Positions 21,723 to 38,254 of a DNA stretch of 64,000 nt are shown one piece after another. The notes under the pieces were generated by a model. That model was given only the letters and a program-made list of their open reading frames with translations, was not told the origin of the DNA and made no database searches. How positions within the stretch are numbered: position 1 is the first letter of the stretch; each line of letters opens with the position of its first letter. The stretch lies in sequence record OQ718158.1; one strand, 5' to 3'. The position numbers and the translations under genes are program-made.

Positions 21723-22883
21723 TTAAATTGGTGAATCTTCAACAAATATAGTACTAGCAGTACCACCAGATACTAGGTTAGTACCACTTGAATATATTTT
21801 GTTTCCATCTGTCATATATGTTTTACCATAGCAACTTTGGATTTTAACATCTTTGAAATTCAAATCAGGAGTAATAGATTTAGTGTAAGTTAATACGTTA
21901 GTAGTTGAACCTGTACTTAATTGTCCATAGTATGAAGTCGCTGAGTTATTACCAGCAACGTATACACCTGTGTCAGTAATAACAAAGTTAGAGTAATATC
22001 CGTACCCATATCCTATATCTAATATATTTCCTTGTGGTTGATTTGCCACAACAGTTGTCAATATGTTGGTTGATGCTGCTGTATTAGTAGCAGCCTGTCC
22101 ATATGATTGGTCACCACCAGTATACACAGTAACAACAGACGTACTATTGTTTCTAGCAATACCTTGAACCATACCATTAACAGTACTTATAAATGCTATA
22201 GTACTAACAGTTGCTGGTAATCTATCTGATAATGCGAATACATTATAAAAACTCACGGTTGAAGTACTGTTAGTATCACCCTTAACTTCACCTGTGTAAT
22301 ATAGTCTACCACTTTCGGCAATAAACGAACACATGTTTATACCTGCAATAATCCTTTTCGGAACCGCACCACTTGGTATAATTGATTGTACTAAAGTAGA
22401 GAAACTGTTAGAATAAGAAGCATTCCCAAGCTGCCCTCCTGTGTTATAACCACCACTCCAAATTGTCCCATTACTCATAAGTATTGAAATGAAGTTATTC
22501 CCTAGTGATATTTCTGAAATTGTTCCTTGGGAATTAACTTGATTAATAACAGTTTGCATAGAAGTCCATGCATTAACAGATGATGTACCCATACACACAT
22601 TGTATTGTCGCCCTGTGTATTGATATGTACCATCTGATTTGTGAATCATTGTAGCATACTGACCACACCATACATCAATGACATCCGATGCAGTTACTGT
22701 CCATGATGTTCTGGTTGTATTGTCTCCTAAACCCAACTGACCACTTGAATTGGAACCACGGGTATATAATTTACCATTACTACCCAATACCATAACCCAG
22801 TTATACCCTGCAACTAATTTTTTAATGGCAGCAGGGGATGGTGCAATGTTCCCGTAATCAAACAATCTTACAAAAGGTAACAT
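21723..22883 (-). CDS. RCC1/BLIP-II-like beta-propeller protein (member 3)
   Basis: true start 22883 (MLPFVRLFDYGN, AAGGAG SD); GKLYTRGSNSSGQLGLGD. Confidence 0.88.
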   Translation of the reverse strand: MLPFVRLFDYGNIAPSPAAIKKLVAGYNWVMVLGSNGKLYTRGSNSSGQLGLGDNTTRTSWTVTASDVIDVWCGQYATMIHKSDGTYQYTGRQYNVCMGTSSVNAWTSMQTVINQVNSQGTISEISLGNNFISILMSNGTIWSGGYNTGGQLGNASYSNSFSTLVQSIIPSGAVPKRIIAGINMCSFIAESGRLYYTGEVKGDTNSTSTVSFYNVFALSDRLPATVSTIAFISTVNGMVQGIARNNSTSVVTVYTGGDQSYGQAATNTAASTNILTTVVANQPQGNILDIGYGYGYYSNFVITDTGVYVAGNNSATSYYGQLSTGSTTNVLTYTKSITPDLNFKDVKIQSCYGKTYMTDGNKIYSSGTNLVSGGTASTIFVEDSPI

Positions 22884-22896
22884 TTTTTTCTCCTTA

Positions 22897-24045
22897 TTAT
22901 ATTGATGGCATATCCAACACATATGAGTTGCTAGTAATTGATGAATATGTAGAATTTAAACCTGTACTATAAACATAATCACCTGCCCATAAGAATGTTC
23001 TATCCAATGTTGTATGTATTTCAATATCATCATATGATGATAATGATATTTGTGCTAGTGTATATGTAGTAGCATCAATGTTTGAACCAATACCCAAAGT
23101 ACCATTGTATTGTGATTGGGAGTTTTGACCAGTTGCATATATACCAGATTTGGTTATTAAATGCTGATTGTACATTGACGTACCTTTAAACAATTTAATT
23201 AAATTAGAGTTAGGTGTAGTTATTGGTGCAGGAGCAAGTATTGTTGTTGTAGTGCCACCATCACCTAATTGTCCATATCGTTGGTAACCACCAGCGTATA
23301 CCTGTTTAACTCCAGCCGTAGTTTCAATAATAAAGAATGAACCATAGCCAGTAGTATTAAAGTCTATAATTTTATTTGTACTCAAACCAACATTATATCT
23401 AGTAAATGTTGTTGCATTTGCTGAACCACCAGCATTCCCACCTACCATTTGCCCACTATAATAAAATGCTCCAGTACTGTCAGTATAAGCCATACAGTTC
23501 TCACTACCATAGATTTTTACTGGTGTACTGGGGAAACTAGAGGTTATATTCACACATGTATTATATTTTGCAGTAGTTCCAGTAATTTCACCATTGTTGT
23601 TTTGCCCAATTACCCAAACTGTGTCATCCGAACGTATAGCCATTGAGCTATAAAACGAGGATACAAATTGTTTAATAAAGGAACCAGGGAGAGAAGTAAG
23701 CATACTATTGATTTGTGCACTCACATTGGTCCATGTATTCACAACTGAATTGACACCTGCGGCTGCACCTGAACCAGAACTCCACCATGATTCATCATTC
23801 TTTTTAATCAATGTACCATTAGCAGAGCAATAAACATCAGCAACTGAACTATTAACTAATATCCATGCCCTCGCTGCTGTTGTATTACCAGTACCTAGCT
23901 GTCCTGCTGCATTACTACCCTTAGCATATAAATCTCCATTCTGCGTTAAAAGCATAGCATGTTGGTATCCAGTTGACAATTTCTTTATTTTTGGTAATGC
24001 TGGTGCTTCATTTCCATAATCAAACATTCTAACAAAAGGTAACAT
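22897..24045 (-). CDS. RCC1/BLIP-II-like beta-propeller protein (member 4)
   Basis: MLPFVRMFDYGN; GDLYAKGSNAAGQLGTG, YAGGYQRYGQLGDG. Confidence 0.88.
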   Translation of the reverse strand: MLPFVRMFDYGNEAPALPKIKKLSTGYQHAMLLTQNGDLYAKGSNAAGQLGTGNTTAARAWILVNSSVADVYCSANGTLIKKNDESWWSSGSGAAAGVNSVVNTWTNVSAQINSMLTSLPGSFIKQFVSSFYSSMAIRSDDTVWVIGQNNNGEITGTTAKYNTCVNITSSFPSTPVKIYGSENCMAYTDSTGAFYYSGQMVGGNAGGSANATTFTRYNVGLSTNKIIDFNTTGYGSFFIIETTAGVKQVYAGGYQRYGQLGDGGTTTTILAPAPITTPNSNLIKLFKGTSMYNQHLITKSGIYATGQNSQSQYNGTLGIGSNIDATTYTLAQISLSSYDDIEIHTTLDRTFLWAGDYVYSTGLNSTYSSITSNSYVLDMPSI

Positions 24046-24116: not shown

Positions 24117-25295
24117 TTAAAATTGTGGTAGTTGGTATTCAGTTAATGTCCATGTACCTGTAACTGTTCCATTCGGGGACATCCCTGTGTAGTATAATTT
24201 GCCACCAGCGTATACAAATAATGCATTGTCATTAGCAGCAACCATCGAAGTTTCTGGATCAAATACTACAGAAATTGGTAATTGTGATTGAACAAATACT
24301 GACGCATTGGTAGTTGAATTGTTACCAAGTTGTCCATAGTTGTTATACCCAGTACTGAAAATACGGCTACCATTTCTATATAATATACCCCTAGTACTTT
24401 GTGAATGTAGATCTATAAATTCAAAATCGGAAACATTAGTTAATTGCAAATAAGTACTTTGTGGAGTTAGTGCTGTCTTATTCGTATTGGTTGTAACTCC
24501 ATTACCTAATTGACCGTAAAATTGTGATCCTAAACCATATAGCGGATAAGTACCATCTGAATAAAGAACTATACCCAACATCTTATTATGTGAAAGAATA
24601 TCTATTGGATATTTCCCTGTACCAAAGTCGTATCTAGTCCAAGACGTTAATGTAGCCGACGCTGCCCCAGTTAACAAAGTACCAGTGGTAGTTGTGCCAC
24701 ATCGCCACGCTGAATTATCATTCTTAATTATCCAAGTTGGACTATTAAAAAATGAACTAACCTTTTTAACATTAATATTGACCTGGGTTAATTCTGTAAG
24801 CATTGATGAACTTGAACCCAACTCATATGTGGAGTTATTACCTATTGCATAAAGAACCCCACTATTTGTTAGTACAAACAAATTACGAACATTAGGATAT
24901 ATCTCTTTAATATCATCAATATTAATACCCGAAAAATAAGAAGTACATTCCACAAAGGTAGTACTTTGTACTTCACTCGATGCACCTGTCCAGGTGTTCC
25001 ATCCTGCATAATAAAATTTATTATCATTAGTCTGTACTAAGCTATATGAAGAGTTCCTAGTGCACCAGAAATTTTTCACATTTTGCATTAATCGAACCCA
25101 TGATGTCTGTGTTGTAGTATTACCCAGTCCGAAAATACCAGCATTGTTTCCACCGATACCCCACAAATCACCGTTACTATACTGTAGCATCAATGTATTG
25201 TTGGTGAACGCTGATGGTGCTTGCATTTTAATTACATTAGCTGATGGTGCAGGTTTAATATTCCCGTACTTAACCATTCTTGCAAAAGGTAACAT
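24117..25295 (-). CDS. RCC1/BLIP-II-like beta-propeller protein (member 5)
   Basis: MLPFARMVKYGN; YGLGSQFYGQLGNG, FSTGYNNYGQLGNN. Confidence 0.88.
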   Translation of the reverse strand: MLPFARMVKYGNIKPAPSANVIKMQAPSAFTNNTLMLQYSNGDLWGIGGNNAGIFGLGNTTTQTSWVRLMQNVKNFWCTRNSSYSLVQTNDNKFYYAGWNTWTGASSEVQSTTFVECTSYFSGINIDDIKEIYPNVRNLFVLTNSGVLYAIGNNSTYELGSSSSMLTELTQVNINVKKVSSFFNSPTWIIKNDNSAWRCGTTTTGTLLTGAASATLTSWTRYDFGTGKYPIDILSHNKMLGIVLYSDGTYPLYGLGSQFYGQLGNGVTTNTNKTALTPQSTYLQLTNVSDFEFIDLHSQSTRGILYRNGSRIFSTGYNNYGQLGNNSTTNASVFVQSQLPISVVFDPETSMVAANDNALFVYAGGKLYYTGMSPNGTVTGTWTLTEYQLPQF

Positions 25296-25370: not shown

Positions 25371-26561
25371 TTATAGTTGTCTTGGAGTATCAAGTACATA
25401 TCTATTTGTACTAGGACCACCATCATCATAAGTTCCGGTTGAATATATATTTTTCATATCAGCAGTTAGGAAAGTACGTAACGACCCTCGATATATTTTT
25501 ATTTTATCATACATAGAATATGTTATTTCTGACGGCAATGGACATGCAGTAAATTTACCAATGGTAACATTAGAACCAACACCCAATGAACCAGCATAAC
25601 TACTCGCATTTAAACCTGTTGCATATACACCAGAACTCGTAACTAGTATACTAGATTGTGCTGGGTATCCAGTATGAATTGAATACAAAGTACCGGGTGG
25701 TAAGGTTGTACTATTATTTCCTAATACTGCTCGTGCTGTACTAGACGTAGTGTTATTACCCCATGCCCCATTATTGGCGTTCCCACCCACTAGGAACTGA
25801 CGTGCTCCTGTACTTGGATTCTCCACTAAAGCACTGACTGCACCAATTGTACATACAACATATTGTAATGTTTTTGTATATGTTGTACTTGGCTGATATA
25901 AAGTATATTGATTGTATGGAGTCCATGTATCAGTAGTACTTATACCTGATGTACTACCACCAATATATAAATTATTTTGTGTATCATAAAACATTACACA
26001 GCTATTTGTTGACTGTATTCGTGCAATATCAACATTAGGCGTGACAGCTTTTACAAATGATCCATCTGTTATTTGCTGAGTACTACCAGTACCATCAGCG
26101 AATTGTCTAGCCCCACTCCAACCAGTACTCCATATTGTATTATTATCCATTAAGAAAGTAAACCAAGTAGTACCTGCATACATCTGTTTAATTGAAGTAC
26201 CTGAACTTTGTGTGTACAAATTTTCAATATATTGGTTATAACTTAAAAATGATGTAGTACTAGTTTCTAAACCAATATGACTACCATATCCACAATAAAA
26301 ATAATTTAAGTCCTTATCTTGAACTAACAAAGTTCCTTGTGTCATCCAGCAATCTTTGACATTTTCTCTAATTAATGTCCACGACCTTACTGCATTATTA
26401 TTTCCGCGACCGAACTTCCCATAACTATTATTTCCTCGTGCGTATAGTTGACCGTCAGTATAAAGTACAACCACATCAGTATCAGTTGGTATTATTTTCT
26501 TAATTAGAAGAGGTTCAGGTGTGATATTCCCATAATCAAACAATCTAACAAAAGGTAACAT
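25371..26561 (-). CDS. RCC1/BLIP-II-like beta-propeller protein (member 6)
   Basis: MLPFVRLFDYGN; GQLYARGNNSYGKFGRG. Confidence 0.88.
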   Translation of the reverse strand: MLPFVRLFDYGNITPEPLLIKKIIPTDTDVVVLYTDGQLYARGNNSYGKFGRGNNNAVRSWTLIRENVKDCWMTQGTLLVQDKDLNYFYCGYGSHIGLETSTTSFLSYNQYIENLYTQSSGTSIKQMYAGTTWFTFLMDNNTIWSTGWSGARQFADGTGSTQQITDGSFVKAVTPNVDIARIQSTNSCVMFYDTQNNLYIGGSTSGISTTDTWTPYNQYTLYQPSTTYTKTLQYVVCTIGAVSALVENPSTGARQFLVGGNANNGAWGNNTTSSTARAVLGNNSTTLPPGTLYSIHTGYPAQSSILVTSSGVYATGLNASSYAGSLGVGSNVTIGKFTACPLPSEITYSMYDKIKIYRGSLRTFLTADMKNIYSTGTYDDGGPSTNRYVLDTPRQL

Positions 26562-26631: not shown

Positions 26632-27774
26632 TCAATAAGCTTCCCACGGTAAGGGTGTCTTCCTAAATCCATACCTGGTTGTGGTCGCACCATCACCAGC
26701 AATGTATCGACCGATACCACATTGGTATAACTCTGTACTACTACATATAGCACCACCAATAGTACCACTACTCCACAGAATTATATTAGAATATGTTATT
26801 GGTAAATCACTACATTTAGTATATACACCAACGGTAGCAGTCCCACTAATACCACCAAACATACTTCGGTTAGCACCAGTATAATATATACCATCTGGAC
26901 TCATAAATGCAGAGGTGTAAGTTGTACTACAATCCACTGGACTTCTTATAGTATTAAGATCGCCTGGGTATGTCCTGACACCAAAGGTGTATACATTACC
27001 ATCAGTTGTAATACCATTACCTAACTGCCCACTGTTTTGTCCACCACATGTAAGCAACAATGCAGAACCAGAAACAATTGCAGTAGCATTATACGAAGTA
27101 CCCATCGCAATAGAAGCACCAGACAATAGTTTTGGAGTAACAATAGCTGTTGTATTACCCTGGCCTAATTCACCATTGATATTTCGTCCCCATGCGTATA
27201 TAGAAGTTGTATCCAATCGACATAGTACTGAACCATAACTAAACGTATATCGCATGTCAATTACCGCATTAGGCAAATTAACCTTAGTTGCAACACTAAT
27301 AACACCACCAGTAACACCACTGTTTGCGTTCATGTTACGACCATATGCATATAAAGAACCATCTGAAGTTTTAATATGCATCATACCATCTGTACAATAC
27401 AATGCATCTATACTATCCACTGCAACCGGACCCATACTGGTAGTTATATCGGTCCACCCAAGCGTGGTAGTACTGGAAATTAAGTTATTTCCGGCGTATA
27501 GTATTCTATTATTATTAGTAACTACAACTGTATATCTGGCAGTAACACCAATTAATCGAACATCAGTATATATCTTAGACCACGCACCTAATGAATTGGT
27601 GTTTGCATCCAAAAAGCCCAACTGCCCATCTGTATTGTATCCAATACCCCATACATCACCTGCACTGTCCAATAACACTTCATGTGAAAATCCAATCTTA
27701 AAATCTTTTATTGTAGGAACTACCGGAACTGGTGCAATATTCCCGTACTTAACCATTCTAGCAAAAGGTAACAT
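26632..27774 (-). CDS. RCC1/BLIP-II-like beta-propeller protein (member 7)
   Basis: MLPFARMVKYGN; GDVWGIGYNTDGQLG, YAWGRNINGELGQG. Confidence 0.9.
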   Translation of the reverse strand: MLPFARMVKYGNIAPVPVVPTIKDFKIGFSHEVLLDSAGDVWGIGYNTDGQLGFLDANTNSLGAWSKIYTDVRLIGVTARYTVVVTNNNRILYAGNNLISSTTTLGWTDITTSMGPVAVDSIDALYCTDGMMHIKTSDGSLYAYGRNMNANSGVTGGVISVATKVNLPNAVIDMRYTFSYGSVLCRLDTTSIYAWGRNINGELGQGNTTAIVTPKLLSGASIAMGTSYNATAIVSGSALLLTCGGQNSGQLGNGITTDGNVYTFGVRTYPGDLNTIRSPVDCSTTYTSAFMSPDGIYYTGANRSMFGGISGTATVGVYTKCSDLPITYSNIILWSSGTIGGAICSSTELYQCGIGRYIAGDGATTTRYGFRKTPLPWEAY

Positions 27775-27850: not shown

Positions 27851-28999
27851 TTAACGAGGTATAACTATTTTTTTGAATAATCCAGTATTTCCTGCATTTT
27901 CTTCTTCATATGGAATTGTACCCATACCAGCAGTTCTGCCACCATTCCCTGAACCATACAGTTCTCCATTCTTAATCATGAATGTTATCATATAACCATG
28001 TGTCATTTTATCATATGGAACTGGTTCAGTTATATTATTACATGCTCGCCATGTACTAATAACACTAGAGTTCGTTATACCATCACCTGATGCGTTTCCT
28101 CGACCAGCGAAATACCATATCCCACCTGCTCTAACGTGTGCTTCATAATTAGAACCACCTATGTAATCAATCGCAGTACTAGGAATACTAGAAGCTGGTA
28201 TCTTTGTGATTGTTCTAAGACTGTTAATAGTGCCATTAGTACCATCACCCAACTGTCCATATATTTGTGAACCGAATACATATAGCCCATCACTCTTTAA
28301 TACGTAATTAGCACTATATGCATTTTCTGAATTTACCTGTAATACTCCAGTAGTAACAGTAGTCAATGTGGTGGTAGTTGTACCAGTCGAACCAATACTA
28401 GATTTATTCCCACTGTACTTTAATATTCCATTATTGTATAATACAAATGAAGCATTATCAGCGGTTACACCAATATCTTTAACATCAACTTCTGGTGTCA
28501 ATGTCAGTACTGATACTCTTTGGTCAACAGCCCCAGTAAAAACTTCACCGTTGTTATTGTAACCCATCTTATATAATTTATTATCTATTGTTAATAATAA
28601 TGTAACGCCGTTTCCTATAACTATTTTACTATATGTGTCATTCACATCATCAAAAATACCAAGTATTTCTGTCCATACACGATAAGTAGTATTAACACCA
28701 CGATAGATTTGAGCACCAGTACTCCACCATGTGCCATCATTTTTACGTACTAATATTCCATGTGTATTACCAGTAGTCCAAAATTCCTTTACATCAGTTA
28801 AACATAAAACCCACTCTTCAACTATAGTAGGAGAACTACTACCAGTACCTAATTGATAGTAAAAATTATGCCCTCTGCCATATAATCTTCCGTCTTCTAA
28901 TAAAATAAACACATTATTCTGTAAAACTTTTACCATCTTTATACCAACTGGCACAGGTGCTTCATTCCCATAATCAAACATTCTAACAAAAGGTAACAT
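27851..28999 (-). CDS. RCC1/BLIP-II-like beta-propeller protein (member 8)
   Basis: MLPFVRMFDYGN; GRLYGRGHNFYYQLGTG, YVFGSQIYGQLGDG. Confidence 0.88.
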   Translation of the reverse strand: MLPFVRMFDYGNEAPVPVGIKMVKVLQNNVFILLEDGRLYGRGHNFYYQLGTGSSSPTIVEEWVLCLTDVKEFWTTGNTHGILVRKNDGTWWSTGAQIYRGVNTTYRVWTEILGIFDDVNDTYSKIVIGNGVTLLLTIDNKLYKMGYNNNGEVFTGAVDQRVSVLTLTPEVDVKDIGVTADNASFVLYNNGILKYSGNKSSIGSTGTTTTTLTTVTTGVLQVNSENAYSANYVLKSDGLYVFGSQIYGQLGDGTNGTINSLRTITKIPASSIPSTAIDYIGGSNYEAHVRAGGIWYFAGRGNASGDGITNSSVISTWRACNNITEPVPYDKMTHGYMITFMIKNGELYGSGNGGRTAGMGTIPYEEENAGNTGLFKKIVIPR

Positions 29000-29070: not shown

Positions 29071-30180
29071 TTATTTTGGTAAATCAATTTTAGTAAAGAC
29101 TGCAACATCCTCGCTTGCCCCTGGGATGGCGTAATAAGAACCAGTACTATATACATCTCCGTCTTTTGTTAATATTGAAGTTAAACCATCACTAAAAAGA
29201 ACATCACTAATCTCACTAACTGAAACAGGTAATTGTAAATTAGTAGCACTATATATTGCACCAGTTTGAGAATTGTTTAATCCCAAACCACGGTTCGCCC
29301 CAACACCCTTCTGATATGTACTAGTAATTATAATTTGTGTAGCAGTATTTAATGCAGGTGAATTCGTCATAAACAACGGAGAACTATTAGGCAAAGAACT
29401 TACAGGAACTGCACGAAATGTAGTTGTATCTGAACTAAGAAAGTTTGGCGTTTGACCACATACGAAATATGATGTACCATTATAGTAATTAAATGCATTA
29501 CCACCTATAGCTGCATCTATTACTCCAGTACTACGTAATCCCCACGTGTTAATTTGTGTTCGGTTCCCCGTGCCATGCTGACCCCTGTCATTCCACCCAG
29601 AACTATATAACTTATTATCTAATGTAATATACATACTGTCATTTGAATTCGTCATTACTTTACGCACATTAGTAGCACATTGAGTTAATGTGTAAATTGA
29701 TGATGAACCAATACCTAAAGCACCACGATATCCATTAGCCCCTGCACCATAGAGTACTGAACTAGTGCTAAGTACAAATATTAAACCATACGAACATACT
29801 ATATCAGCAATTTCATTTACCGATAGTACACTCGTAAACCACGCAGTCCTATCAACTAATACAGTACTGTAAGAAGTCCCAGTAGAAGACGAAAACCAAT
29901 AAGTCTCACCAGCAGTCCATATAGTATTGTCACTCTTAATAACAACAACTGTACGATCACCAGCAAAAAAATTAGTAACTTCTGTACTCACTAATCTCCA
30001 TGAAGATACAGTGTTGGTATTACCATTTCCAGATTCACCACCTTGATTTCTACCTATGTAATATAAATCATGTGAATCAGTCAATAAGAATTGACCCTGT
30101 GTAGACGCACCAACTTTTATTATATTTTTAGGACCAGGTGTGATATTCCCATAATCAAACATTCTTACAAAAGGTAACAT
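29071..30180 (-). CDS. RCC1/BLIP-II-like beta-propeller protein (member 9)
   Basis: MLPFVRMFDYGN; LYSSGWNDRGQHGTG. Confidence 0.88.
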   Translation of the reverse strand: MLPFVRMFDYGNITPGPKNIIKVGASTQGQFLLTDSHDLYYIGRNQGGESGNGNTNTVSSWRLVSTEVTNFFAGDRTVVVIKSDNTIWTAGETYWFSSSTGTSYSTVLVDRTAWFTSVLSVNEIADIVCSYGLIFVLSTSSVLYGAGANGYRGALGIGSSSIYTLTQCATNVRKVMTNSNDSMYITLDNKLYSSGWNDRGQHGTGNRTQINTWGLRSTGVIDAAIGGNAFNYYNGTSYFVCGQTPNFLSSDTTTFRAVPVSSLPNSSPLFMTNSPALNTATQIIITSTYQKGVGANRGLGLNNSQTGAIYSATNLQLPVSVSEISDVLFSDGLTSILTKDGDVYSTGSYYAIPGASEDVAVFTKIDLPK

Positions 30181-30190: not shown

Positions 30191-31321
30191 TTAATTTAAT
30201 AATGCCCCTGGCAAATCCACTTTGACGAATTGTGCATATGCTGAGGAATTTTGATCAAAGTTTGGTCCCAATCCATAAAATGAGCTAATGCCGTCTTCAT
30301 TTGTGTATATGATATAAACGTTCTTTACATCATTTCCGCATATAAATCGAATGTCTTTCGTTTGTGTTCCCGCTGGAACATTACGAAGGTTCACAACGCC
30401 ATTACTTGCATTGTTATCAGCCGACGCAATTGGTAATTGATTTTGACCATATTGACCACGCATATTTTTTGCATCTAAACCAAACACAGTATCTGATACC
30501 GCACCAACTTTCAAAAATGAACCAAAACTATTATTGAATGACTTTGGAAATGTACCACTATAAACACTTCTCCCATCTGATAATACCGCTGAACTGAATT
30601 TCCCGCTATTCGATATGGCAAATTCATTGTAAGGAAGTGTACCCATTTTGGTATATACAGAATATGAATTAGTGGAAGTATTATCAATAATCTTATTACC
30701 ATTATATCCAATACCATACTGGTATCCGTCTGCATCTTGAACTATACACAAAGGACCACTTGGGGTTTGTGTCAACGAAACAACACGTTCAACTTGTATA
30801 TCACCAAATGTATTTCTTCGCCATGTTCTATCTATTATAGTACTAGTATTACCCAAAGATAATGCCACACTATATAATAGATTGTTTTCAGTAAAAATGG
30901 CAACATAATATGCGTGGTTAATAACTTGCTTCATCCCAGCATCAATAACTTCCTGTGGAATATGATCAGTAACATCCAACCAATCAAGGTTAGATGATGC
31001 AATATCTGGAGTACTGAATTTGTCAAATCTAGTTGAGCCACAAACTAGCACTCTATCATCATTTGTCAAAGCCACTGTGCTAGTCTGCATATTAGAACTG
31101 AATGATTTAACATTACTAATGTTAGACTTGTACCAACCCTTATCAGCAGCACCCACCGTGAATCCGGTTCCCATTGATCCACTTGTACTTGTACCATAAG
31201 CCCACATCTCACCACTATATGTTAGTGCCATACAGTGGCTTCCATTTGCTTGGAAATCCTTTATACCAGTGGGAGCAACCACTGTATTCCCATAATCAAA
31301 CATTCTAACAAAAGGTAACAT
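30191..31321 (-). CDS. divergent RCC1-like beta-propeller protein (member 10)
   Basis: MLPFVRMFDYGN; GEMWAYGTSTSGSMGTG; more degenerate repeats. Confidence 0.8.
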   Translation of the reverse strand: MLPFVRMFDYGNTVVAPTGIKDFQANGSHCMALTYSGEMWAYGTSTSGSMGTGFTVGAADKGWYKSNISNVKSFSSNMQTSTVALTNDDRVLVCGSTRFDKFSTPDIASSNLDWLDVTDHIPQEVIDAGMKQVINHAYYVAIFTENNLLYSVALSLGNTSTIIDRTWRRNTFGDIQVERVVSLTQTPSGPLCIVQDADGYQYGIGYNGNKIIDNTSTNSYSVYTKMGTLPYNEFAISNSGKFSSAVLSDGRSVYSGTFPKSFNNSFGSFLKVGAVSDTVFGLDAKNMRGQYGQNQLPIASADNNASNGVVNLRNVPAGTQTKDIRFICGNDVKNVYIIYTNEDGISSFYGLGPNFDQNSSAYAQFVKVDLPGALLN

Positions 31322-31398: not shown

Positions 31399-32580
31399 TT
31401 ATGGTAAAATGATAGATTGTAACGAACTCATACCCAATGCTGGAACACTAGCCTGTGGTGCTGGAGAATTCAATTTTGGTGATGAAACCGCATATGACAT
31501 TCCTGAACCCAAATCTGGATCAAAAACTACAGCACAATAATTCCCACTATATATAAGTCCATTCTTGTATCCTTGTGCACTTTGAATGCATTTCGTGAAC
31601 GTACCAATATCTGTAGTGGCATTTATTAAGTTCCTCCCACGATAACCGCAGGTGTATATGAAATTATCATCGCCTATGTACATACTAGAATCCCCAGAAG
31701 AACTACATAGATACGACATATAAGCACGCATGTTTTTAGGAGCAACTGACAATGTACCTGCATAGAATTTATTATTCGAACCCGTAATATCACCATCACC
31801 CAATGCACCAAAACTTCCCCAGCCAGTACCATAATATCTCTTATCACTCAAGAATATAATACAGTTGTTATTACACATCTTGACTTGATATATCAATGAA
31901 GGATCAACCCCAGGGAATGATTCAGTGTATGTTAGAACAGCCAGATCAGTACTAGCATTACATTGATGATATGTATTAGTACCAGCGGACAAGATTGTTC
32001 CATTAGCTAACAGAATTCTCGCAGTACCAGTACCAGCAGTACAAGCAACTGCACTTCCTGCACTTCCGGTGTATATTTGTCTGAAAGTAAAGAAACCAAC
32101 AGTTTTACTTCCCTGCCCACTCCAACCAGTATTATCAACTCCACACGCCCATACTGAACCATCTTGCATGATCATCATTACACCAAAGCGTTCTATTGAA
32201 ATATAAACAATCTTCGTTGTATCAACTGCACTAAATCTAGAAGTTATATCAGTCCATACCTTAACACTTACCGCCGTCGCACTGGAAGTAGGATCTTCAC
32301 CAGCTATCATTATCCTCCCATTGTTAGTAAGATACATTGTCTGACTATAACCAGTACTACAAAACTTAACACTATCAGTCTCTGGAACTTTTAACCACTC
32401 GTTGTAACGTGTTACGTTAGTGTTATTACCTAACTGATAATAGTTATTCATCCCAGATACATATAACACACCATCCTTTATTAAACTATAAGTCGCACTA
32501 TAGTCACTACAGGTATAACGTGTACCCACAGGTCGCTCAACGACGTTCCCATAATCAAACATTCTAACAAAAGGTAACAT
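31399..32580 (-). CDS. RCC1/BLIP-II-like beta-propeller protein (member 11)
   Basis: MLPFVRMFDYGN; GVLYVSGMNNYYQLGNN, YGTGWGSFGALGDG. Confidence 0.88.
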   Translation of the reverse strand: MLPFVRMFDYGNVVERPVGTRYTCSDYSATYSLIKDGVLYVSGMNNYYQLGNNTNVTRYNEWLKVPETDSVKFCSTGYSQTMYLTNNGRIMIAGEDPTSSATAVSVKVWTDITSRFSAVDTTKIVYISIERFGVMMIMQDGSVWACGVDNTGWSGQGSKTVGFFTFRQIYTGSAGSAVACTAGTGTARILLANGTILSAGTNTYHQCNASTDLAVLTYTESFPGVDPSLIYQVKMCNNNCIIFLSDKRYYGTGWGSFGALGDGDITGSNNKFYAGTLSVAPKNMRAYMSYLCSSSGDSSMYIGDDNFIYTCGYRGRNLINATTDIGTFTKCIQSAQGYKNGLIYSGNYCAVVFDPDLGSGMSYAVSSPKLNSPAPQASVPALGMSSLQSIILP

Positions 32581-32653: not shown

Positions 32654-33775
32654 TTAAAAGGGCAACGGTAACTCAGTAAAAGTACTTACGTCCGGTAAAC
32701 CATACATTGAATTAGCATCACCACAGTAATACCACTTCGTAGAATCATGTACCACCGATAAACGCTGTGCACATAACACTTCCTGTATGTCATTAAACAC
32801 CATCGGGACTAACTCATATGTATCCGCAAATGAAGATACACCACCACTCGCATGAAAAGTATTCGTCCCAGCATAAAATAACTGATTAGTGTTCTTACCC
32901 ACAGCAAATGTCATCAATATCCCATCATTCTCCCATAAAGAAGAAAACTTATCAACACTACCAGAAAGCTCTGTGTAAGTACTCGTAATGGCACTCGCAG
33001 CCGCCGCATTACCCATCTGTTTATTCAAGTTCTGTCCAGCAATAAAATATCTCGTGCGTGCACTAGAATCAGTATATAATAACCCAGTGTTCGTAGTCAT
33101 CATTCCAATGTCCTTAATCGTCATACCAGTCTGTGAATAACTTAGATACGAAGTTAAACTACCATTATTACCCAACGAACCGTTATCACTCATGCCACAA
33201 CGATGTAATATACCACTTGTATCAACGTAGATAGTACTAACTAAACTCGTATACAACTCTTGTACATTATTCGCAATAAACACAGCAGTCGCCTTATTAC
33301 TAACCCCACCAAATGATAGGTTATTATCAAATCCCTTAGCGTATAATTGATTATTAGTAGTCAATAATCCAATCGTGAAATAAGACATTTTCATATCCCT
33401 TACTGTACTCAAATCTACTGCCCCAAATTGGTGCGTAACATCTGTCCATGTGAAAATCTGTGCACTACCAACACCACCCGTTTCAAACCATTTGTCACCA
33501 CAGTACAATATGCGATTACCCTTAGTAAAGATAACTGTTACCAATCCACTACCACACGCAAACTTTACATCACTTCTAACCTTCGTCCAATCAAGTACAT
33601 AGGTAGTGGTGTTATTACCTATACCTAACTTGCCATAACGGTTATAACCACGCACCCACAAATCACCACTCTTAGTAATTAATAGTAATGCGTCTCCTGT
33701 ACTTATTATTCGAAATCCCGAACTAGGATCAGGTACTTCATTTCCATAATCAAACATTCTAACAAAAGGTAACAT
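32654..33775 (-). CDS. RCC1/BLIP-II-like beta-propeller protein (member 12)
   Basis: MLPFVRMFDYGN; GDLWVRGYNRYGKLGIG. Confidence 0.88.
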   Translation of the reverse strand: MLPFVRMFDYGNEVPDPSSGFRIISTGDALLLITKSGDLWVRGYNRYGKLGIGNNTTTYVLDWTKVRSDVKFACGSGLVTVIFTKGNRILYCGDKWFETGGVGSAQIFTWTDVTHQFGAVDLSTVRDMKMSYFTIGLLTTNNQLYAKGFDNNLSFGGVSNKATAVFIANNVQELYTSLVSTIYVDTSGILHRCGMSDNGSLGNNGSLTSYLSYSQTGMTIKDIGMMTTNTGLLYTDSSARTRYFIAGQNLNKQMGNAAAASAITSTYTELSGSVDKFSSLWENDGILMTFAVGKNTNQLFYAGTNTFHASGGVSSFADTYELVPMVFNDIQEVLCAQRLSVVHDSTKWYYCGDANSMYGLPDVSTFTELPLPF

Positions 33776-33848: not shown

Positions 33849-34976
33849 TCAAAAAGGTAAATCAATTTGCTTAGTAATAATAGTATCTAACGGTATTGAA
33901 CACAATGAGAAATTCTTTCCACCCGTATTTTCAGGATTATATCCATTCATCCATACATTATTACCTTCGTAAAATGTATTCCAGTATAAAGACCCACTAT
34001 ATCGTGTATTCGAATTGAACGATGTAAAATTGAATTCTTGAAATGCTGTAAAATATGGAAGGGAACTTGAACTACTTCCCGTAAATGGGGTATGCCCAGT
34101 TGCTATTAGTTTGTTTGTATCTGCATTAATTAAAAATACAACACTAGTCGAATAGTCCAACGAATCAGGATGATATATATTACTCATATCACCTATAGTA
34201 AAACCAACATCAAAAACTTTACTATGTGCACCACTACCAGCAAAAGTAGTTCCAGTTGCATATATTTTATTATCAGATGTTATCATTACAAAACCAACAC
34301 CAGAAACAAAACTGCATTTTATATCATAAGATATATCATCAAACAACGGAACAAATGTGGTTGCATCACCCGATGTTGCTTTAACTTGAAAGCTGTTATT
34401 TGAACCTGAACCATATACAGTTCCATCGTTTTTAATCTTAAACAATGTATCGCCAAGGTAACCGCCAAATATATTATCCACATTAGTGTCAAGTACAGTC
34501 CACGCTGAAACATAATTTTTATGTCCTAAACCTAATGTACCACTTCGATTCCATCCTCTTCCATAAAGTGTTCCGTCTTTCATTAATATAAATGCTGTAT
34601 AACCACATAACATTTTTTTAATTTGGGTAACATCTATACCAGTGAAATACACAGCCCAGTCAGTATATCCTTGTTGGAAAGTATTAGAATTCGTGAATGC
34701 ATATGTTGAACCTGAACCATATATTTTATCACCTTTAATAACAACGGAAAACGATCCTAACCATAAGTCATCAACTTCAGTTGTGATTTGTTGAACTGCT
34801 CCTAACGATACAAACTGTGTACTTAAACCCGCATTATAGTTTGAATCTTCACCGTGTGCATATACAGTGCCATCTTGCATTAGAAACATTTCAAGAGTGT
34901 AACTAACAACACTTTTCTTTATATTATTAACTTCGATTATATTCCCATAATCAAACATTCTAACAAAAGGTAACAT
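33849..34976 (-). CDS. RCC1/BLIP-II-like beta-propeller protein (member 13)
   Basis: MLPFVRMFDYGN; GTLYGRGWNRSGTLGLG. Confidence 0.88.
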   Translation of the reverse strand: MLPFVRMFDYGNIIEVNNIKKSVVSYTLEMFLMQDGTVYAHGEDSNYNAGLSTQFVSLGAVQQITTEVDDLWLGSFSVVIKGDKIYGSGSTYAFTNSNTFQQGYTDWAVYFTGIDVTQIKKMLCGYTAFILMKDGTLYGRGWNRSGTLGLGHKNYVSAWTVLDTNVDNIFGGYLGDTLFKIKNDGTVYGSGSNNSFQVKATSGDATTFVPLFDDISYDIKCSFVSGVGFVMITSDNKIYATGTTFAGSGAHSKVFDVGFTIGDMSNIYHPDSLDYSTSVVFLINADTNKLIATGHTPFTGSSSSSLPYFTAFQEFNFTSFNSNTRYSGSLYWNTFYEGNNVWMNGYNPENTGGKNFSLCSIPLDTIITKQIDLPF

Positions 34977-35045
34977 AATTCCCTCCTTTATTCATTATAC
35001 TATATTTAATCAAAAAAAGCCAGTATCAAGTACTGGCATATTAAT

Positions 35046-36194
35046 TTACTGCAAAAATGACATATCGACTTCTGTATAATTAAGAACGTTCTGTCCAGAA
35101 ATACCACCCATTACTACTATTGCAAGGCCACAATAATATAATTTTCCAGTATCAGTAAGTATAAGTGAACCAGATGGGGTGCGTACCAAATTACAAGAGG
35201 TATTAAACGAAGTATATGAAGGAGTATAGGAGTACTGATTAATATTATTACCAACACCTAATTGACCAGACGCGTTGCTTCCAGATGCATAAAGTACTTC
35301 ATCACCTTTAACTATATGTGATGCCATGTTACCAACACAAGTATATAAACTATAAACACCTGCACTCAATAATGTGGGGGTTTTATATTGTATATCAGTA
35401 GAAGAGGAAGTACCACCTGTACCAAATTCGTTCCCATATTGTGCACCGAACTGTTTACCACAAGCGTACAAATTATTATCCGATTTGATAAAAAATGTAC
35501 TCTGATAACTTACATTAAAATCTATAACATCCGAAGAAATCATCGTCACCCCAGTAATAGAAGTTTGATTACCCGTGCCCAACTGGTAGTAATAGTTAAA
35601 ACCACAACCCCATAAAGTATTATCTTCTCGCAAATAAATGTTACCAACTGCCTTTTTAACCGAAGTTATAGTATCTACTCTTTTGAATGTGTTAAAAGAA
35701 TTAATGTTTGTGCCATCACCAAATGATGATATGTTCGATATATTGTTAGCTCCACAACAATACAATGTACCATCGTTTGTTATCAAATTCACCTTCATAT
35801 CATAAAAACTACTCATGTATTTTATATCAGAAACATTAATACCACTTGATGTTATCCACGTAGTACAGTCCGTCCACAAAGTTTTTCTATCAGTTACACC
35901 AGTGAATGCCTTCGTGTTACCAGTGATAAAAACTTTTCCAGTACCTTTCTCTTCATACAATTGACAATCACTACTGTTATCTTCCAATAGAACTCGTTTA
36001 ACATTCTCCGCACAAAGAATAAATTTACTCGATGCTACACCTGTACCAGTACCCCAATTCGTCGCAGAAGATGCATACAACTTATCAGTATAAGTATCAT
36101 GAAGATACATAGAATCACTGGAATATATTTTAAAACGCCCAGAGTTGGTAGGTGCTTCATTCCCATAATCAAACATTCTTACAAAAGGTAACAT
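35046..36194 (-). CDS. RCC1/BLIP-II-like beta-propeller protein (member 14)
   Basis: MLPFVRMFDYGN; LWGCGFNYYYQLGTG, LYASGSNASGQLGVG. Confidence 0.88.
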   Translation of the reverse strand: MLPFVRMFDYGNEAPTNSGRFKIYSSDSMYLHDTYTDKLYASSATNWGTGTGVASSKFILCAENVKRVLLEDNSSDCQLYEEKGTGKVFITGNTKAFTGVTDRKTLWTDCTTWITSSGINVSDIKYMSSFYDMKVNLITNDGTLYCCGANNISNISSFGDGTNINSFNTFKRVDTITSVKKAVGNIYLREDNTLWGCGFNYYYQLGTGNQTSITGVTMISSDVIDFNVSYQSTFFIKSDNNLYACGKQFGAQYGNEFGTGGTSSSTDIQYKTPTLLSAGVYSLYTCVGNMASHIVKGDEVLYASGSNASGQLGVGNNINQYSYTPSYTSFNTSCNLVRTPSGSLILTDTGKLYYCGLAIVVMGGISGQNVLNYTEVDMSFLQ

Positions 36195-36206
36195 ATTTCC
36201 TCCAAA

Positions 36207-37112
36207 TTATTTAAAAACATACTGCGTATTAACACGTGTCCCGTTGTCGTAACCAAGTACGTAAAATATTTCAGCACTATTATTAGAGCCAAATAATGCA
36301 CCAGTACTATTACTCAACGTTGTATTGATAGCTAATGGTATCCATTTGTTTTGCTCGGCATCATATTTTAATAAATTTAATGCACCATAAGATACTGCAT
36401 ATATACCTTTGTCATATCTATTGTAAATTATCTTACTAGGGTTAGCTCCACCAACTGCTGCCATTCTTGACCAAACCGCACTCTCTATGTGATATTTTTG
36501 TGCAGGAGTAGATCCTTGTCCTGTAAAATATATGTAAGTACCATCAGTGCACATATCACCACCACCATTGTTTGTTGTATTCCCAGTAGTACCTAACGAT
36601 GTCCATGTATTAGTACTCGGCGTATAACTATATAATGCAGTATTAGACGGTGAACCCCACAAATATATCTTATCCCCTGTAGTAATCATCTTACTATATA
36701 CTGCCTGGTTAGGTTTGCCAACACTTGTATTATTCAGTGTCCATGTATCAGAGCTTATGTCATATACATAAAAATTATTATTAGCAACATTCGCTGCACC
36801 TAAACCACCGAACAAATATATTTTTCCTTGATAGGCACACAATGCACTTCCATAGGTGGATACTGGTGGTGATGATAATTGTACCCATATTCTAGAATTT
36901 AAATTAAAACTCCATAACTGATTATCCTGGTTCGAAGTATTCATTATACCACCAAATATATAAGCAGTATTTCTTGATGCATCATACGTATAACCAAAGT
37001 TATTTCGTGCTGAAGGTACTGGTGATGTGGTAAATTGAGTTCGTATACCACCATTTGGGGCTGGTAATGGAGCTTCATTCCCATAATCAAACATTCTAAC
37101 AAAAGGTAACAT
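36207..37112 (-). CDS. Kelch-repeat beta-propeller protein with the same N-terminal tag (member 15)
   Basis: true start 37112 (MLPFVRMFDYGN); AYIFGG, IYLFGG, YVYDISSDTW, YSYTPSTNTW. Confidence 0.88.
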   Translation of the reverse strand: MLPFVRMFDYGNEAPLPAPNGGIRTQFTTSPVPSARNNFGYTYDASRNTAYIFGGIMNTSNQDNQLWSFNLNSRIWVQLSSPPVSTYGSALCAYQGKIYLFGGLGAANVANNNFYVYDISSDTWTLNNTSVGKPNQAVYSKMITTGDKIYLWGSPSNTALYSYTPSTNTWTSLGTTGNTTNNGGGDMCTDGTYIYFTGQGSTPAQKYHIESAVWSRMAAVGGANPSKIIYNRYDKGIYAVSYGALNLLKYDAEQNKWIPLAINTTLSNSTGALFGSNNSAEIFYVLGYDNGTRVNTQYVFK

Positions 37113-37160
37113 ATTTCCTCCTTTATTCATTATATCATATTTACCCCATAAACAAAACCC

Positions 37161-37189
37161 TTGACATCCTTTCAGTACTGGTGTACTAT
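37161..37189 (+). promoter_or_regulatory. sigma70 early promoter for the mini-gene operon
   Basis: TTGACA-17-TACTAT, AGTACT in the spacer; divergent from the Kelch gene promoter. Confidence 0.8.
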
Positions 37190-37214
37190 AGAAGGAATAC
37201 AAGGAGAACTACAC

Positions 37215-37442
37215 ATGACAGCTACACTTAAGTACTACATTAATACTCTAAATGAACTAGAGTACGGTAAGTTTCTCGCGGATAGTTCGTGGCTAATTGA
37301 GCTAAAAACACATAACAGTACTGGATGTAACCTTATGCTGAACAATGCACTTGATACCCTTGTAGTGAGTATTTTACACAGCACCATCTGCGGGGATAGC
37401 AATAAACAATTATCAAAAATCTTAGTACTGGTAGCTCTATGA
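37215..37442 (+). CDS. tandem mini-protein
   Basis: ATG 37215 after AAGGAG; KYYINTL...ILVLVAL. Confidence 0.7.
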   Translation: MTATLKYYINTLNELEYGKFLADSSWLIELKTHNSTGCNLMLNNALDTLVVSILHSTICGDSNKQLSKILVLVAL

Positions 37443-37651
37443 ACACTATGAACATTGAACAGTACTACATTGATGCACTGCCAACAAAAGGTCTACGAGA
37501 AAGCCTACTGTATACACAAAATAATTATATAAACCTCAAACATTGTCCTAAACTATTGAACTCGTACAGGAATAATAAAATAAGAAATGCTGTACAAGGG
37601 GTAGAAAGTATGCAATACTATTACATCCTAACCCTTTTAATCGAGCACTAA
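37439..37651 (+). CDS. tandem mini-protein (paralog of 37850)
   Basis: MNIEQYYIDALP...VQGV..YY.IL.L. Confidence 0.75.
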   Translation: MNTMNIEQYYIDALPTKGLRESLLYTQNNYINLKHCPKLLNSYRNNKIRNAVQGVESMQYYYILTLLIEH

Positions 37652-37652
37652 T

Positions 37653-37838
37653 ATGTATAAAGAATTCTACTGTAGTAAGCTGCACAAACAATACAGAGAT
37701 TCATTTCCCAATGAACCTATGGATATGAATAGTCCCTTTTATAAATTTGACTTCAGACTGGAGACACGTTATGCAATAGAACATCAATTTCCTGAAACTA
37801 AGTACTTATCTATCATGAACCTCATCTTTAAGTTCTAA
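37653..37838 (+). CDS. tandem mini-protein
   Basis: MYKEFY..KL...YL.IM.LIF. Confidence 0.75.
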   Translation: MYKEFYCSKLHKQYRDSFPNEPMDMNSPFYKFDFRLETRYAIEHQFPETKYLSIMNLIFKF

Positions 37839-37849
37839 AAGAGTACTAT

Positions 37850-38244: not shown

Positions 38245-38254
38245 AGAGAATACT

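Follow-up and report, generated by a model that had tools for sequence, protein, structure and literature searches.

The window analysed here, the whole 64,000-nt stretch of sequence record OQ718158.1, is the end of the genome of an Asteriusvirus jumbo coliphage (E. coli), with 99.8% identity to vB_Ec-M-J. It carries an array of genes whose products start with the same 12-residue peptide, MLPF.....YGN, hereafter the tag. A six-frame scan of the whole window returned exactly 15 ORFs with this start, all on the minus strand, which according to Pfam encode 14 RCC1-like proteins and one Kelch protein. This is the set to which the preliminary description of this DNA had assigned the tag, and the search for further tag-bearing ORFs that it proposed left the window total at 15. 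The two tag variants reported there are also distributed as described: genes ending at 20519, 24117 and 26632 have MLPFARMVKYGN, and the remaining genes follow MLPFV(R/L)(M/L)FDYGN. The linker said to follow the tag usually was found as a Pro/Ala-rich stretch in about two-thirds of the 15 genes. Every tagged ATG, the upper coordinate of each gene below, is preceded by an AGGAG-type ribosome-binding site (RBS) at a distance of 6-9 nt (15/15). Two of the mechanical ORF calls are too long, namely 36207..37202 (TTG), with the true start at 37112, and 21723..22922, with the true start at 22883. The genes of the array are as follows.

36207..37112, minus strand: Kelch-propeller gene, 301 aa; tag MLPFVRMFDYGN encoded at 37077-37112; linker EAPLPAPNGG; first of the array
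35046..36194, minus strand: RCC1-like gene, 382 aa; tag MLPFVRMFDYGN; starts 12 nt past the Kelch gene, without its own cassette
33849..34976, minus strand: RCC1-like gene, 375 aa; tag MLPFVRMFDYGN
32654..33775, minus strand: RCC1-like gene, 373 aa; tag MLPFVRMFDYGN
31399..32580, minus strand: RCC1-like gene, 393 aa; tag MLPFVRMFDYGN
30191..31321, minus strand: RCC1-like gene, 376 aa; tag MLPFVRMFDYGN
29071..30180, minus strand: RCC1-like gene, 369 aa; tag MLPFVRMFDYGN; starts 10 nt past the preceding gene, without its own cassette
27851..28999, minus strand: RCC1-like gene, 382 aa; tag MLPFVRMFDYGN
26632..27774, minus strand: RCC1-like gene, 380 aa; variant tag MLPFARMVKYGN
25371..26561, minus strand: RCC1-like gene, 396 aa; tag MLPFVRLFDYGN
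24117..25295, minus strand: RCC1-like gene, 392 aa; variant tag MLPFARMVKYGN
22897..24045, minus strand: RCC1-like gene (modelled paralog), 382 aa; tag MLPFVRMFDYGN
21723..22883, minus strand: RCC1-like gene, 386 aa; tag MLPFVRLFDYGN; starts 13 nt past the preceding gene
20519..21652, minus strand: RCC1-like gene, 377 aa; variant tag MLPFARMVKYGN
18633..19757, minus strand: RCC1-like gene, 374 aa; most divergent tag, MLPFVLLFDYGN; last of the array

Most of these genes are preceded by a near-identical intergenic cassette of ~70 nt, and the array is accompanied by the following signals.

37113..37170, minus strand: promoter and RBS region of the first gene, GGGGTAAATATGATATAATG...AAGGAGG
34977..35045, minus strand: intergenic cassette with a terminator hairpin GCCAGTAC..GTACTGGC and T-run, a promoter-like box TTAAATATAGTATAATG and an RBS
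33776-33848, 32581-32653, 31322-31398, 29000-29070, 27775-27850, 26562-26631, 25296-25370, 24046-24116 and 21653-21722, minus strand: further copies of the intergenic cassette
20491-20515, minus strand: hairpin
18602-18628, minus strand: final hairpin

Terminator-like sites number 21 in the window, versus 8.3 ± 2.6 in shuffled sequences. Twelve hairpins on the minus strand each lie 3-10 nt past the stop codon of a tagged gene, and this terminator hairpin is almost specific to the tagged array. A late-type TAAATA motif precedes the tagged genes and also, in phage phAPEC6, the genes for capsid, sheath and wedge. Judged by these sequence signals, the tagged genes resemble late genes that are individually equipped with a promoter and a terminator.

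No other stretch of 12 columns in the alignment of the window paralogs is as well conserved as the tag, which has a mean pairwise identity of 87.5% versus 19.4% for the bodies; a chance origin of the shared peptide is excluded. The product of the Kelch gene matches PF24681 with 94 bits against a cut-off of 50, with Kelch_1, 3, 4 and 6 also above cut-off (Pfam). RCC1 or RCC1_2 exceeds the Pfam gathering cut-off in 13 of the 14 RCC1-like genes; gene 32654-33775 matches WD40_RLD only, and WD40_RLD stays under its cut-off in all 14. The top Foldseek matches of the modelled RCC1 paralog are the seven-bladed propellers of UVR8, RPGR and HERC (UVR8: TM 0.76-0.78, E = 2e-24). Eukaryotic RCC1-like and Kelch propellers have the fold of the 15 window bodies (Pfam, Foldseek), but they lack the tag. 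The names 'regulator of chromosome condensation' and 'DNA condensation protein' are transferred from eukaryotes by annotation only, nothing in favour of a GEF or DNA-condensing activity came to light, and the authors of the phAPEC6 study regard any DNA role of the RCC1-like proteins as speculative.

N-terminal strands often close RCC1 and Kelch propellers and the tag has an alternating hydrophobic pattern, so that it might be an integral closing ('velcro') strand rather than a separate element. AlphaFold2 (AF2) models, which cover two tagged proteins (Kelch and RCC1 paralog 22897..24045), speak against this, and we consider it extremely unlikely. In the Kelch model (mean pLDDT 90.2), residues 1-20 have a pLDDT of ~48-50 and no strand, and the first strand spans residues 24-27; in the RCC1 model (mean pLDDT 89.7), residues 1-10 have a pLDDT of 51, residues 1-19 have one of ~50 and no strand, and secondary structure is absent before residue 20, with a first strand at 20-25; low pLDDT is common for terminal peptides and does not by itself prove that the tag is free. 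Because residues 1-20 are unstructured in the models, the tag does not appear to be the closing strand, and it is predicted to lie outside the folded domain. Both models leave it strandless and outside the propeller, and the portable-tag reading of the preliminary description survives this comparison. The PDB homologs of the RCC1 proteins, all eukaryotic or cellular, start after the tag and align from residue 16 onward only; none of the phage structures in the PDB contains the tagged proteins. The same tag is carried by LamG-like, Gly-rich and other non-propeller proteins, which together with the two models led us to reject the closing-strand candidate.

Scans with degenerate DNA patterns recovered at least ~100 different proteins with the tag, 128-688 aa in length, from 121Q, phAPEC6, CBB, GAP32, XbC2 and uncultured jumbo contigs, and from further contigs which we take to belong to Serratia phage BF and Yersinia phage fHe-Yen9-04. 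The consensus is MLPF-x-(R/I/Q)-(M/L/I)-x-x-Y-(G/A)-N, in which the invariance of M-L-P-F and Y-G-N is partly a product of the search pattern. BLAST clustering, Pfam and PHROGs distinguish at least five fold families among the carriers: RCC1, Kelch, Laminin_G_3/ConA-like (phrog_6011 and phrog_3545), Gly-rich (phrog_4474) and a 168-aa family (phrog_6409). Sequence searches gave no PDB relatives for the Gly-rich, 168-aa and LamG-like families. In XbC2, MLPF heads 11 genes in a row whose products differ in fold, and the full tag is present in 9; XbC2_582 and XbC2_586 keep MLPFPIIS without YGN. The claim that the tag is portable across unrelated folds therefore goes further than first described, extending to at least five fold families and to several genera of phages. 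Outside Rak2-like jumbo phages, the same DNA pattern produced only ~20 isolated matches, in very short ORFs, among 2.9 million viral contigs. Among the metagenome matches listed are unrelated ORFs starting with MLPFKGLYWYGNW and MLPFRTIMSYAN on ordinary metagenome contigs, which we take for chance matches inside cellular genes. The RaK2/phiKp24 lineage is absent among the tag matches and may itself be absent from the scanned collection. The literature searched, which covered the motif itself, RCC1 in jumbo phages and N-terminal motifs of Rak2-like phages, contained no description of the tag; this fits an undescribed tag, short of proof.

At identical-residue positions in the window, codons are identical in 83% of cases in the tag versus 46% in the bodies, and the tags have fixed codons that are rare locally (GGG, CCT and AGA). 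This uniformity suggested that conservation might reside in the nucleic acid: the first 36 nt would belong to the repeated terminator-promoter-RBS-start cassette, their uniformity would be due to gene conversion or to selection for efficient translation initiation, and the peptide would be functionless. The near-identical cassettes ahead of most genes agree with this, as do orthologs whose tags have been overwritten by the majority variant of their genome. Orthologs in the window and in phAPEC6 are 83-94% identical overall, with tags alike at only 8-9 of 12 positions: window tags are of the V..FD type and phAPEC6 tags of the A/G..V/I-K type, and paralogs inside one genome have a common tag. 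The phAPEC6 ortholog of 29071..30180, for example, is 88% identical overall, yet its tag is MLPFGRMVKYGN. These comparisons indicate that tags evolve in concert within one genome. Across genera, however, synonymous variation is free at the Pro, Gly, Tyr and Leu codons of the tag (CCA/CCT/CCG/CCC, GGA/GGG/GGT, TAT/TAC and TTA/CTT/CTA/TTG), while the residues are unchanged. Because codons differ and residues stay fixed, selection acts on the peptide. Three window genes as well as CBB_144 and CBB_247 hold the tag without the cassette. Therefore, gene conversion can explain why tags are uniform inside one genome but not why the peptide has been retained across long evolutionary distances, and a functionless peptide is very unlikely; purely nucleotide-level conservation as the main cause was rejected on the basis of the cross-genus codon comparison.

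Tagged proteins are strongly enriched in published virion proteomes. In CBB, 9 of the 11 tagged proteins, a set obtained with Y-(G/A)-N pattern scans and targeted look-ups that may miss other tag variants, are in the ESI-MS/MS virion list, versus 46 of 543 others (Fisher p = 2.4e-8; PMC5259590 Table 4). They are CBB_144, 247, 536, 537, 548, 549, 551, 552 and 553, and include LamG-like, Kelch and Gly-rich proteins. For phAPEC6 the figures are 8 of 10 versus 54 of 541 (Fisher p = 6e-7; PMC7247149 Table 1); in Asteriusvirus an effect of the tag cannot be told apart from one of the RCC1 fold or of array membership, and only CBB separates these. CBB_144 and CBB_247 sit among nucleotide-metabolism and recombination genes, and both are virion proteins; the association of tagged proteins with the virion is independent of fold. 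The tagged RCC1-like gp001 of GAP32 is likewise a reported virion protein. Tagged proteins have low MS peptide counts (1-7), and MS reports presence in the particle, inside or outside alike. Listing is not proof of a structural role, since the phAPEC6 list includes evident non-structural proteins, namely a topoisomerase, a RecA-like protein, SSB and thymidylate synthase (PMC7247149). Six CBB virion proteins have no homolog in GAP32, and all six are tagged. The link of the tag to the hair-like fibres is loose, because GAP32 has tagged virion proteins but no reported hairs.

The preliminary description compared the tag with the capsid-targeting sequence (CTS) of T4. In T4, unrelated internal proteins (IPI, IPII, IPIII, Alt) have a common, transferable N-terminal targeting sequence of about 10 residues, which decides whether they are present in the particle. 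In phiKZ-like phages, head-internal proteins include paralog families. By analogy, the tag could be a packaging signal by which proteins enter the prohead, bound for instance for the scaffold or for the inner body of phAPEC6, of which RCC1-like proteins are candidate components according to its authors; the cargo would then be internal and possibly ejected with the DNA as a diversifying host-binding or anti-defence set. The low abundance of tagged proteins in virion proteomes is in line with this. However, the T4-type signal ends in the cleavage site L/I-x-E and is removed on maturation, and no prohead-protease site of this form is conserved after or within the tag in the tagged proteins examined (positions 7-9 and 11-13). 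The residue at position 9 varies among K, D, Q, E, N and others and that at position 13 among I, T, V, E and others, and a search for a T4-like site after the tag found none; Glu directly follows the tag in only 6 of the 15 window genes. Furthermore, binding of ligands at surfaces is typical of LamG/ConA-like, Kelch and BNR-type modules, folded propellers of 40 kDa would be awkward for passage through the tail tube, and the CBB-specific virion proteins, all tagged, coincide with extra external hairs. We thus consider packaging into the head rather unlikely. The likeness to the T4 CTS holds in that both are peptides of ~10-12 residues at the extreme N-terminus of otherwise unrelated virion-borne proteins of one phage. 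The analogy is nevertheless weak because no protease site is conserved; there is also no sequence similarity, and the T4 cargo consists of basic internal proteins or enzymes, whereas that of the tag consists of lectin- and propeller-type binding modules.

Machinery other than the virion might also read the tag, be it a phage chaperone or assembly factor, a Clp protease recognizing it as a degron, or an export route, with virion association being secondary. These phages encode ClpP and a Clp ATPase, the CBB ClpP is in the virion list, and, in the window as in CBB, the tagged array has an array of small membrane-protein paralogs next to it. Yet the tagged proteins are stable enough for detection in purified virions of three phages, the tag has neither a signal-peptide-like hydrophobic core nor a lipobox, and the membrane-protein genes form a separate, convergent transcription unit; such a role appears distinctly unlikely. 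As to candidate partners among the neighbours (ORF 19835-20485, an AAA-like protein and the small membrane proteins), all PHROGs matches are to families of unknown function.

The tag is common to 15 window genes and ~100 genes of relatives, it spans at least five folds, and published MS detects most such proteins in the particle; it probably serves as a hitherto undescribed address label by which exchangeable binding modules are attached to the virion. We therefore lean towards regarding the tag as a virion-addressing peptide of Rak2-like jumbo phages that docks these modules, probably for surface display. Of the plug-in docking or targeting role proposed in the preliminary description, portability and the virion link (PMC7247149 Table 1, PMC5259590 Table 4) are supported, and docking, its partner and its location are what we infer. 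In the proposed mechanism, the flexible tag, usually followed by a short Pro-rich linker, stays outside the predicted fold and is shared by many small, unrelated beta-rich modules (RCC1 and Kelch propellers, LamG/ConA-like jelly rolls, Gly-rich and others). The products of the tagged, late-type genes end up in the particle, and there the peptide would most likely dock onto a structural protein, in a socket common to all of them. Tags may evolve in concert within a genome because all of them would have to fit this one socket. The surface of each phage could then present a mixed, fast-evolving set of ligand-binding modules. Candidates for the place of display, seen on phAPEC6 and CBB, are hair- or whisker-like fibres ending in small knobs, or decoration sites of the capsid and tail. 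More tentatively, a single universal 12-residue plug could mount a swappable, fast-diversifying library of lectins and propellers, with 15 modules here, on a single particle socket. Such an arrangement may be a natural modular display system and may supply the cargo of the enigmatic 'hairs'.

If the peptide is sufficient for loading, it would explain how accessory virion proteins, in large and changing numbers, come to be assembled in giant 'hairy' phages, and virion proteins could be predicted by a simple sequence rule among the unknown genes that make up 80% of these genomes. It would also correct the misleading 'chromosome/DNA condensation protein' annotation and serve as a 12-residue handle with which proteins of choice could be loaded onto the particle of a jumbo phage. 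The concerted evolution of tags within each genome clearly exemplifies the co-evolution of many cargo proteins with a single presumed receptor.

Several known systems resemble this arrangement in part. The anchors of branched receptor-binding proteins (Klebsiella phages KP32, phiK64-1, RaK2 and phiKp24; G7C; CBA120) dock onto T4gp10-like domains and, like the tag, are conserved N-terminal attachment parts on differing proteins of one phage. The related jumbo phage phiKp24, for instance, has many receptor-binding proteins with a conserved N-terminal attachment part and a variable C-terminal part (PMC9700779). In those systems the N-terminal part measures tens to hundreds of residues and belongs to a trimeric beta-helix fibre or spike, whereas the tag is a 12-residue peptide on small single-domain beta-rich proteins (propellers, LamG-like), known from sequence and models. 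In adenovirus, the short N-terminal fibre-tail motif FNPVYPY binds the penton base, so that variable fibres use one capsid socket; the analogy is mechanistic only, as this is a eukaryotic virus with a trimeric fibre and an unrelated sequence, and homology is unsupported. In the extracellular contractile injection systems Afp/PVC, the loading signals are longer and poorly conserved in sequence, and the cargo is in the tube lumen. According to a preprint, a disordered N-terminal peptide is sufficient there for loading heterologous cargo into a contractile-tail particle (bioRxiv 10.1101/2023.11.13.566157). None of the present results on tagged phage proteins indicates a place in the tube. Finally, related LamG-like proteins of other lineages have different N-terminal peptides, M-x-E-x-L-L-x-G-K/R-K in PhiEaH1 and MEEMLLVGGGK in 4MG, and the plug-and-socket principle may thus be general, with one pair per lineage.

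The window has a G+C content of 36% and contains no tRNA genes. Over the 10 kb of positions 30000-40000 it is 99.8% identical to Escherichia phage vB_Ec-M-J, an Asteriusvirus jumbo myovirus with a genome of 378.6 kb, and related stretches are found in 121Q, PBECO4, phAPEC6 and about 30 further coliphages and Salmonella phages. Judged by coordinates, the window corresponds approximately to the final 64 kb of the vB_Ec-M-J record. A six-frame scan of the window recovered 15 ORFs starting with the 12-residue peptide MLPF.....YGN (hereafter, the tag), all of which lie in 18633-37112 and are read from the minus strand. This array consists of the following genes, assigned using Pfam:

36207-37112, minus strand: first tagged gene, a Kelch propeller of 301 aa
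18633-36194 region, minus strand: the remaining 14 tagged genes, RCC1-like propellers

In two cases the mechanical ORF call begins too far upstream (36207..37202, which opens with a TTG, and 21723..22922); the plausible starts are the tagged ATGs, at 37112 and 22883, both of which have an AGGAG box in front. In the alignment of the 15 proteins, mean pairwise identity is 87.5% within the tag versus 19.4% (range 10-29%) in the remainder, and the tag surpasses every other 12-column stretch in conservation. The distribution of the two tag variants across the genes is as reported in the preliminary description, and the Pro/Ala-rich linker noted there is seen behind the tag in about two thirds of the genes. 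The annotation of tagged genes as 'regulator of chromosome condensation' or 'DNA condensation protein' is a transferred, unsupported name.

Scanning IMG/VR with a degenerate DNA pattern for M-L-P-F-x5-Y-G-N gave about 60 matches on 348-378-kb contigs, among them 121Q, GAP32 and CBB. Elsewhere, about 20 isolated matches in very short ORFs represent chance background. Three more CBB genes came from a Y-A-N variant of the pattern, the rest being background. In a metagenome scan, the matches listed include further Asteriusvirus-like and Mimasvirus-like arrays, and also unrelated ORFs starting with MLPFKGLYWYGNW and MLPFRTIMSYAN on ordinary metagenome contigs, which we take for chance matches in conserved cellular genes, unrelated to the phage tag. 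In the whole phAPEC6 genome, 13 tagged ORFs form a single array, three of them without GenBank annotation. Record positions 2434, 6063, 7325 and 3614 mark these three ORFs (369, 396 and 244 aa) and gp002, whose annotated start lies 108 nt upstream of its tagged ATG; the start of the record repeats gp550 and gp551 (terminal redundancy). The pooled set comprises at least 104 distinct tagged proteins of 128-688 aa, which fall into unrelated BLAST clusters once the first 14 residues are removed. The tagged families are:

RCC1, double-length forms included
Kelch
Laminin_G_3/ConA-like (phrog_6011 'virion structural protein' and phrog_3545)
glycine-rich (phrog_4474)
168-aa proteins (phrog_6409)

The portability of the tag across unrelated folds is thus wider than initially proposed, extending to at least five families, including non-propeller folds, in several phage genera. 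In Xanthomonas phage XbC2, genes 581-591 are 11 MLPF-headed genes in a row with mixed folds; XbC2_582 and XbC2_586 carry a degenerate MLPFPIIS(N/K)T(N/T) in which Y-G-N is absent. As most of the proteins were recovered through the pattern itself, the constancy of M-L-P-F and Y-G/A-N is in part a product of the search. Among positions not fixed by the pattern, position 5 holds small residues (P, A, V, S, G), position 6 R or, more rarely, I or Q, position 7 M, L or I, position 8 V, F, I, L or N, and position 9 a polar residue; positions 15 and 17, behind the tag, are frequently Pro. No description of the motif was found in the literature searched, jumbo-phage papers included.

A tag buried as the closing propeller strand, the outcome named beforehand as speaking against a portable peptide, is contradicted by structural models and PDB alignments. 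The AlphaFold2 model of the Kelch protein (65-sequence alignment; mean pLDDT 90.2, pTM 0.88) has no strand in residues 1-20 (pLDDT 48-50), and the first strand of the fold comprises residues 24-27. Similarly, the model of the RCC1 paralog at 22897-24045 (30 sequences; mean pLDDT 89.7) matches the seven-bladed UVR8, RPGR and HERC propellers with TM scores of 0.76-0.78, has a pLDDT of 51 in residues 1-10 and lacks secondary structure before residue 20. RCC1 homologs in the PDB align only from residue 16 onward. Accordingly, in both models the tag is predicted to stand outside the fold. The C-termini of about 11 of the 14 RCC1-like paralogs share a hydrophobic-x-(L/S/T/M)-P-x motif (e.g., 33849-33870 and 32654-32675), with endings such as ..DLPF, ..LPLPF, ..DLPK, ..VIPR and ..QLPQF; this motif is probably part of the last blade.

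Two published ESI-MS/MS virion proteomes, with low peptide counts and no information on the location of the proteins detected, were cross-tabulated with the tag. In phAPEC6, the virion list of which includes plainly non-structural proteins (PMC7247149), eight of the ten annotated tagged proteins are present (gp003, 005, 006, 007, 009, 010, 549 and 551; PMC7247149 Table 1) versus 54 of the 541 others (Fisher p = 6e-7). In CBB, the corresponding counts are 9/11 (CBB_144, 247, 536, 537, 548, 549, 551, 552 and 553; PMC5259590 Table 4) versus 46/543 (p = 2.4e-8). The CBB tagged virion proteins are LamG-like, Kelch or Gly-rich and none is RCC1, indicating that virion association tracks the tag rather than the fold. 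The tagged RCC1-like gp001 of GAP32 is also a reported virion protein (PMC5259590). CBB_144 is located between the two anaerobic ribonucleotide reductase genes (nrdD, nrdG) and CBB_247 adjoins an endonuclease VII gene; genome position would not predict virion membership for either. Both are single tagged genes far from the structural module and resemble mobile single-gene insertions. All six CBB virion proteins without a GAP32 homolog are tagged; the CBB authors argued proteins of this kind to be the candidates for the tail 'hairs', which terminate in tiny globular structures (PMC5259590). In phAPEC6, hairs are present on both capsid and tail (PMC7247149). That the tag in one way or another governs virion association is highly probable. 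The window also codes for a likely virion protein which does not use the tag, since an untagged 503-aa protein (5542-7053, plus strand) matches phrog_20398 'virion structural protein' (E = 8e-245).

The best-supported reading is that of a flexible N-terminal address peptide, through which numerous small, beta-rich binding modules of unrelated fold would reach the particle. The tag may dock to a single structural socket, with the modules displayed on the surface, at hairs, capsid hexamer centres or tail rings. Docking and display are suggested by the ligand-binding folds, the diversification of paralogs, the hairy morphology and the CBB-versus-GAP32 comparison, and we lean slightly towards this complete statement. 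The main rival, a T4-like packaging signal with internal and possibly ejected proteins, is less probable, weakened as it is by the nature of the cargo and the lack of a conserved protease site. In concept the tag is like the T4 capsid-targeting sequence, but the two have no sequence in common, and the protease site that is a defining feature of the latter is missing. The tag also has a conceptual parallel in branched receptor-binding proteins that are anchored by their N-termini, as in the related jumbo phage phiKp24 (PMC9700779); here too no sequence is shared, and the tagged proteins lack a defining feature of that class, the trimeric fibre body. The adenovirus fibre tail and the signals by which N-termini load cargo into contractile injection systems are likewise similar in concept, with no common sequence.

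At positions with identical residues in the window, codons are identical in 83% of cases within the tag versus 46% in the protein bodies, and locally rare codons are fixed in the tag (GGG 11%, CCT 31%, AGA 34%). The within-genome uniformity of the tag is due to recent homogenisation. Across genera, by contrast, the codons vary (Pro CCA/CCT/CCG/CCC; Gly GGA/GGG/GGT; Tyr TAT/TAC; Leu TTA/CTT/CTA/TTG) while the residues are kept, pointing to long-term constraint on the peptide. For five window proteins, identity to the phAPEC6 counterpart is 83-94.5%; in three of these ortholog pairs (88-94.5% identity), the tags agree at just 8-9 of 12 positions, with V-R-M-F-D in the window versus A/G-R-M-V/I-K in phAPEC6. 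Window genes starting at 36194, 30180 and 26561 thus carry the variant of their own genome despite 88-94% identity to phAPEC6 orthologs: the tags evolve in concert within each genome. Both gene conversion through a repeated intergenic cassette and the fitting of all cargo of a genome to one partner are consistent with this pattern.

In 12 of the 15 tagged genes, a hairpin GCCAGTAC..GTACTGGC with a T-run follows the stop codon by 3-10 nt, and the scan for terminator-like sites gave 21 versus 8.3 +/- 2.6 in shuffles. In the window as in phAPEC6, the hairpin hardly occurs outside the array. Between the hairpin and the next ATG sits a near-identical box, TTAAATATAGTATAATGAATAAAGGAGG, whose TAAATA core is similar to (T)ATAAATA, a motif that precedes the phAPEC6 genes for capsid, scaffold, protease, sheath and baseplate wedge by 40-65 nt. 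From this likeness we infer that the array genes would be expressed late. Sigma-70-type promoters were not enriched in the promoter scan. The genes starting at 36194, 30180 and 22883 lie 10-13 nt behind the preceding gene and lack the cassette while keeping the tag. Within 18602-35045, the spacers between most array genes are copies of a roughly 70-nt module made up of the hairpin GCCAGTAC..GTACTGGC, a T-run, a TTAAATATAGTATAATG box and an RBS; this module probably drives tandem duplication and gene conversion.

Escherichia phage 4MG gp182 and one gene of Erwinia phage PhiEaH1 (within genes 199-202) encode LamG-like homologs of tagged CBB proteins that share a different N-terminal peptide, M-x-E-x-L-L-x-G-(K/R)-(K/R) (MEEMLLVGGGK in 4MG). 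It recurs on the four consecutive PhiEaH1 genes 199-202, in two of them only with the start shifted downstream of the annotated one, and could represent another tag of this type that is specific to its lineage. A plus-strand 216-aa ORF inside the window array (19835-20485; phrog_34359) is unannotated in vB_Ec-M-J; in phAPEC6, an annotated ORF of comparable size, gp011c, stands where the array ends. Seven small tandem plus-strand genes (16157-18596; 104-123 aa), together with one for a 256-aa P-loop/AAA-like protein (15319-16089, plus strand), lie at the end of the tagged array in convergent orientation. In vB_Ec-M-J, one of the seven is annotated as a membrane protein and the others as hypothetical; their CBB counterparts are putative membrane proteins, and the same neighbourhood (CBB_538-547) flanks the tagged genes of CBB. 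ORFs of at least 80 aa are scarce between 37.5 and 44 kb, and 37500-64000 is occupied by a long plus-strand run of tiny genes, mostly of 45-110 aa and nearly all hypothetical in vB_Ec-M-J, which are probably early genes beside the genome end.
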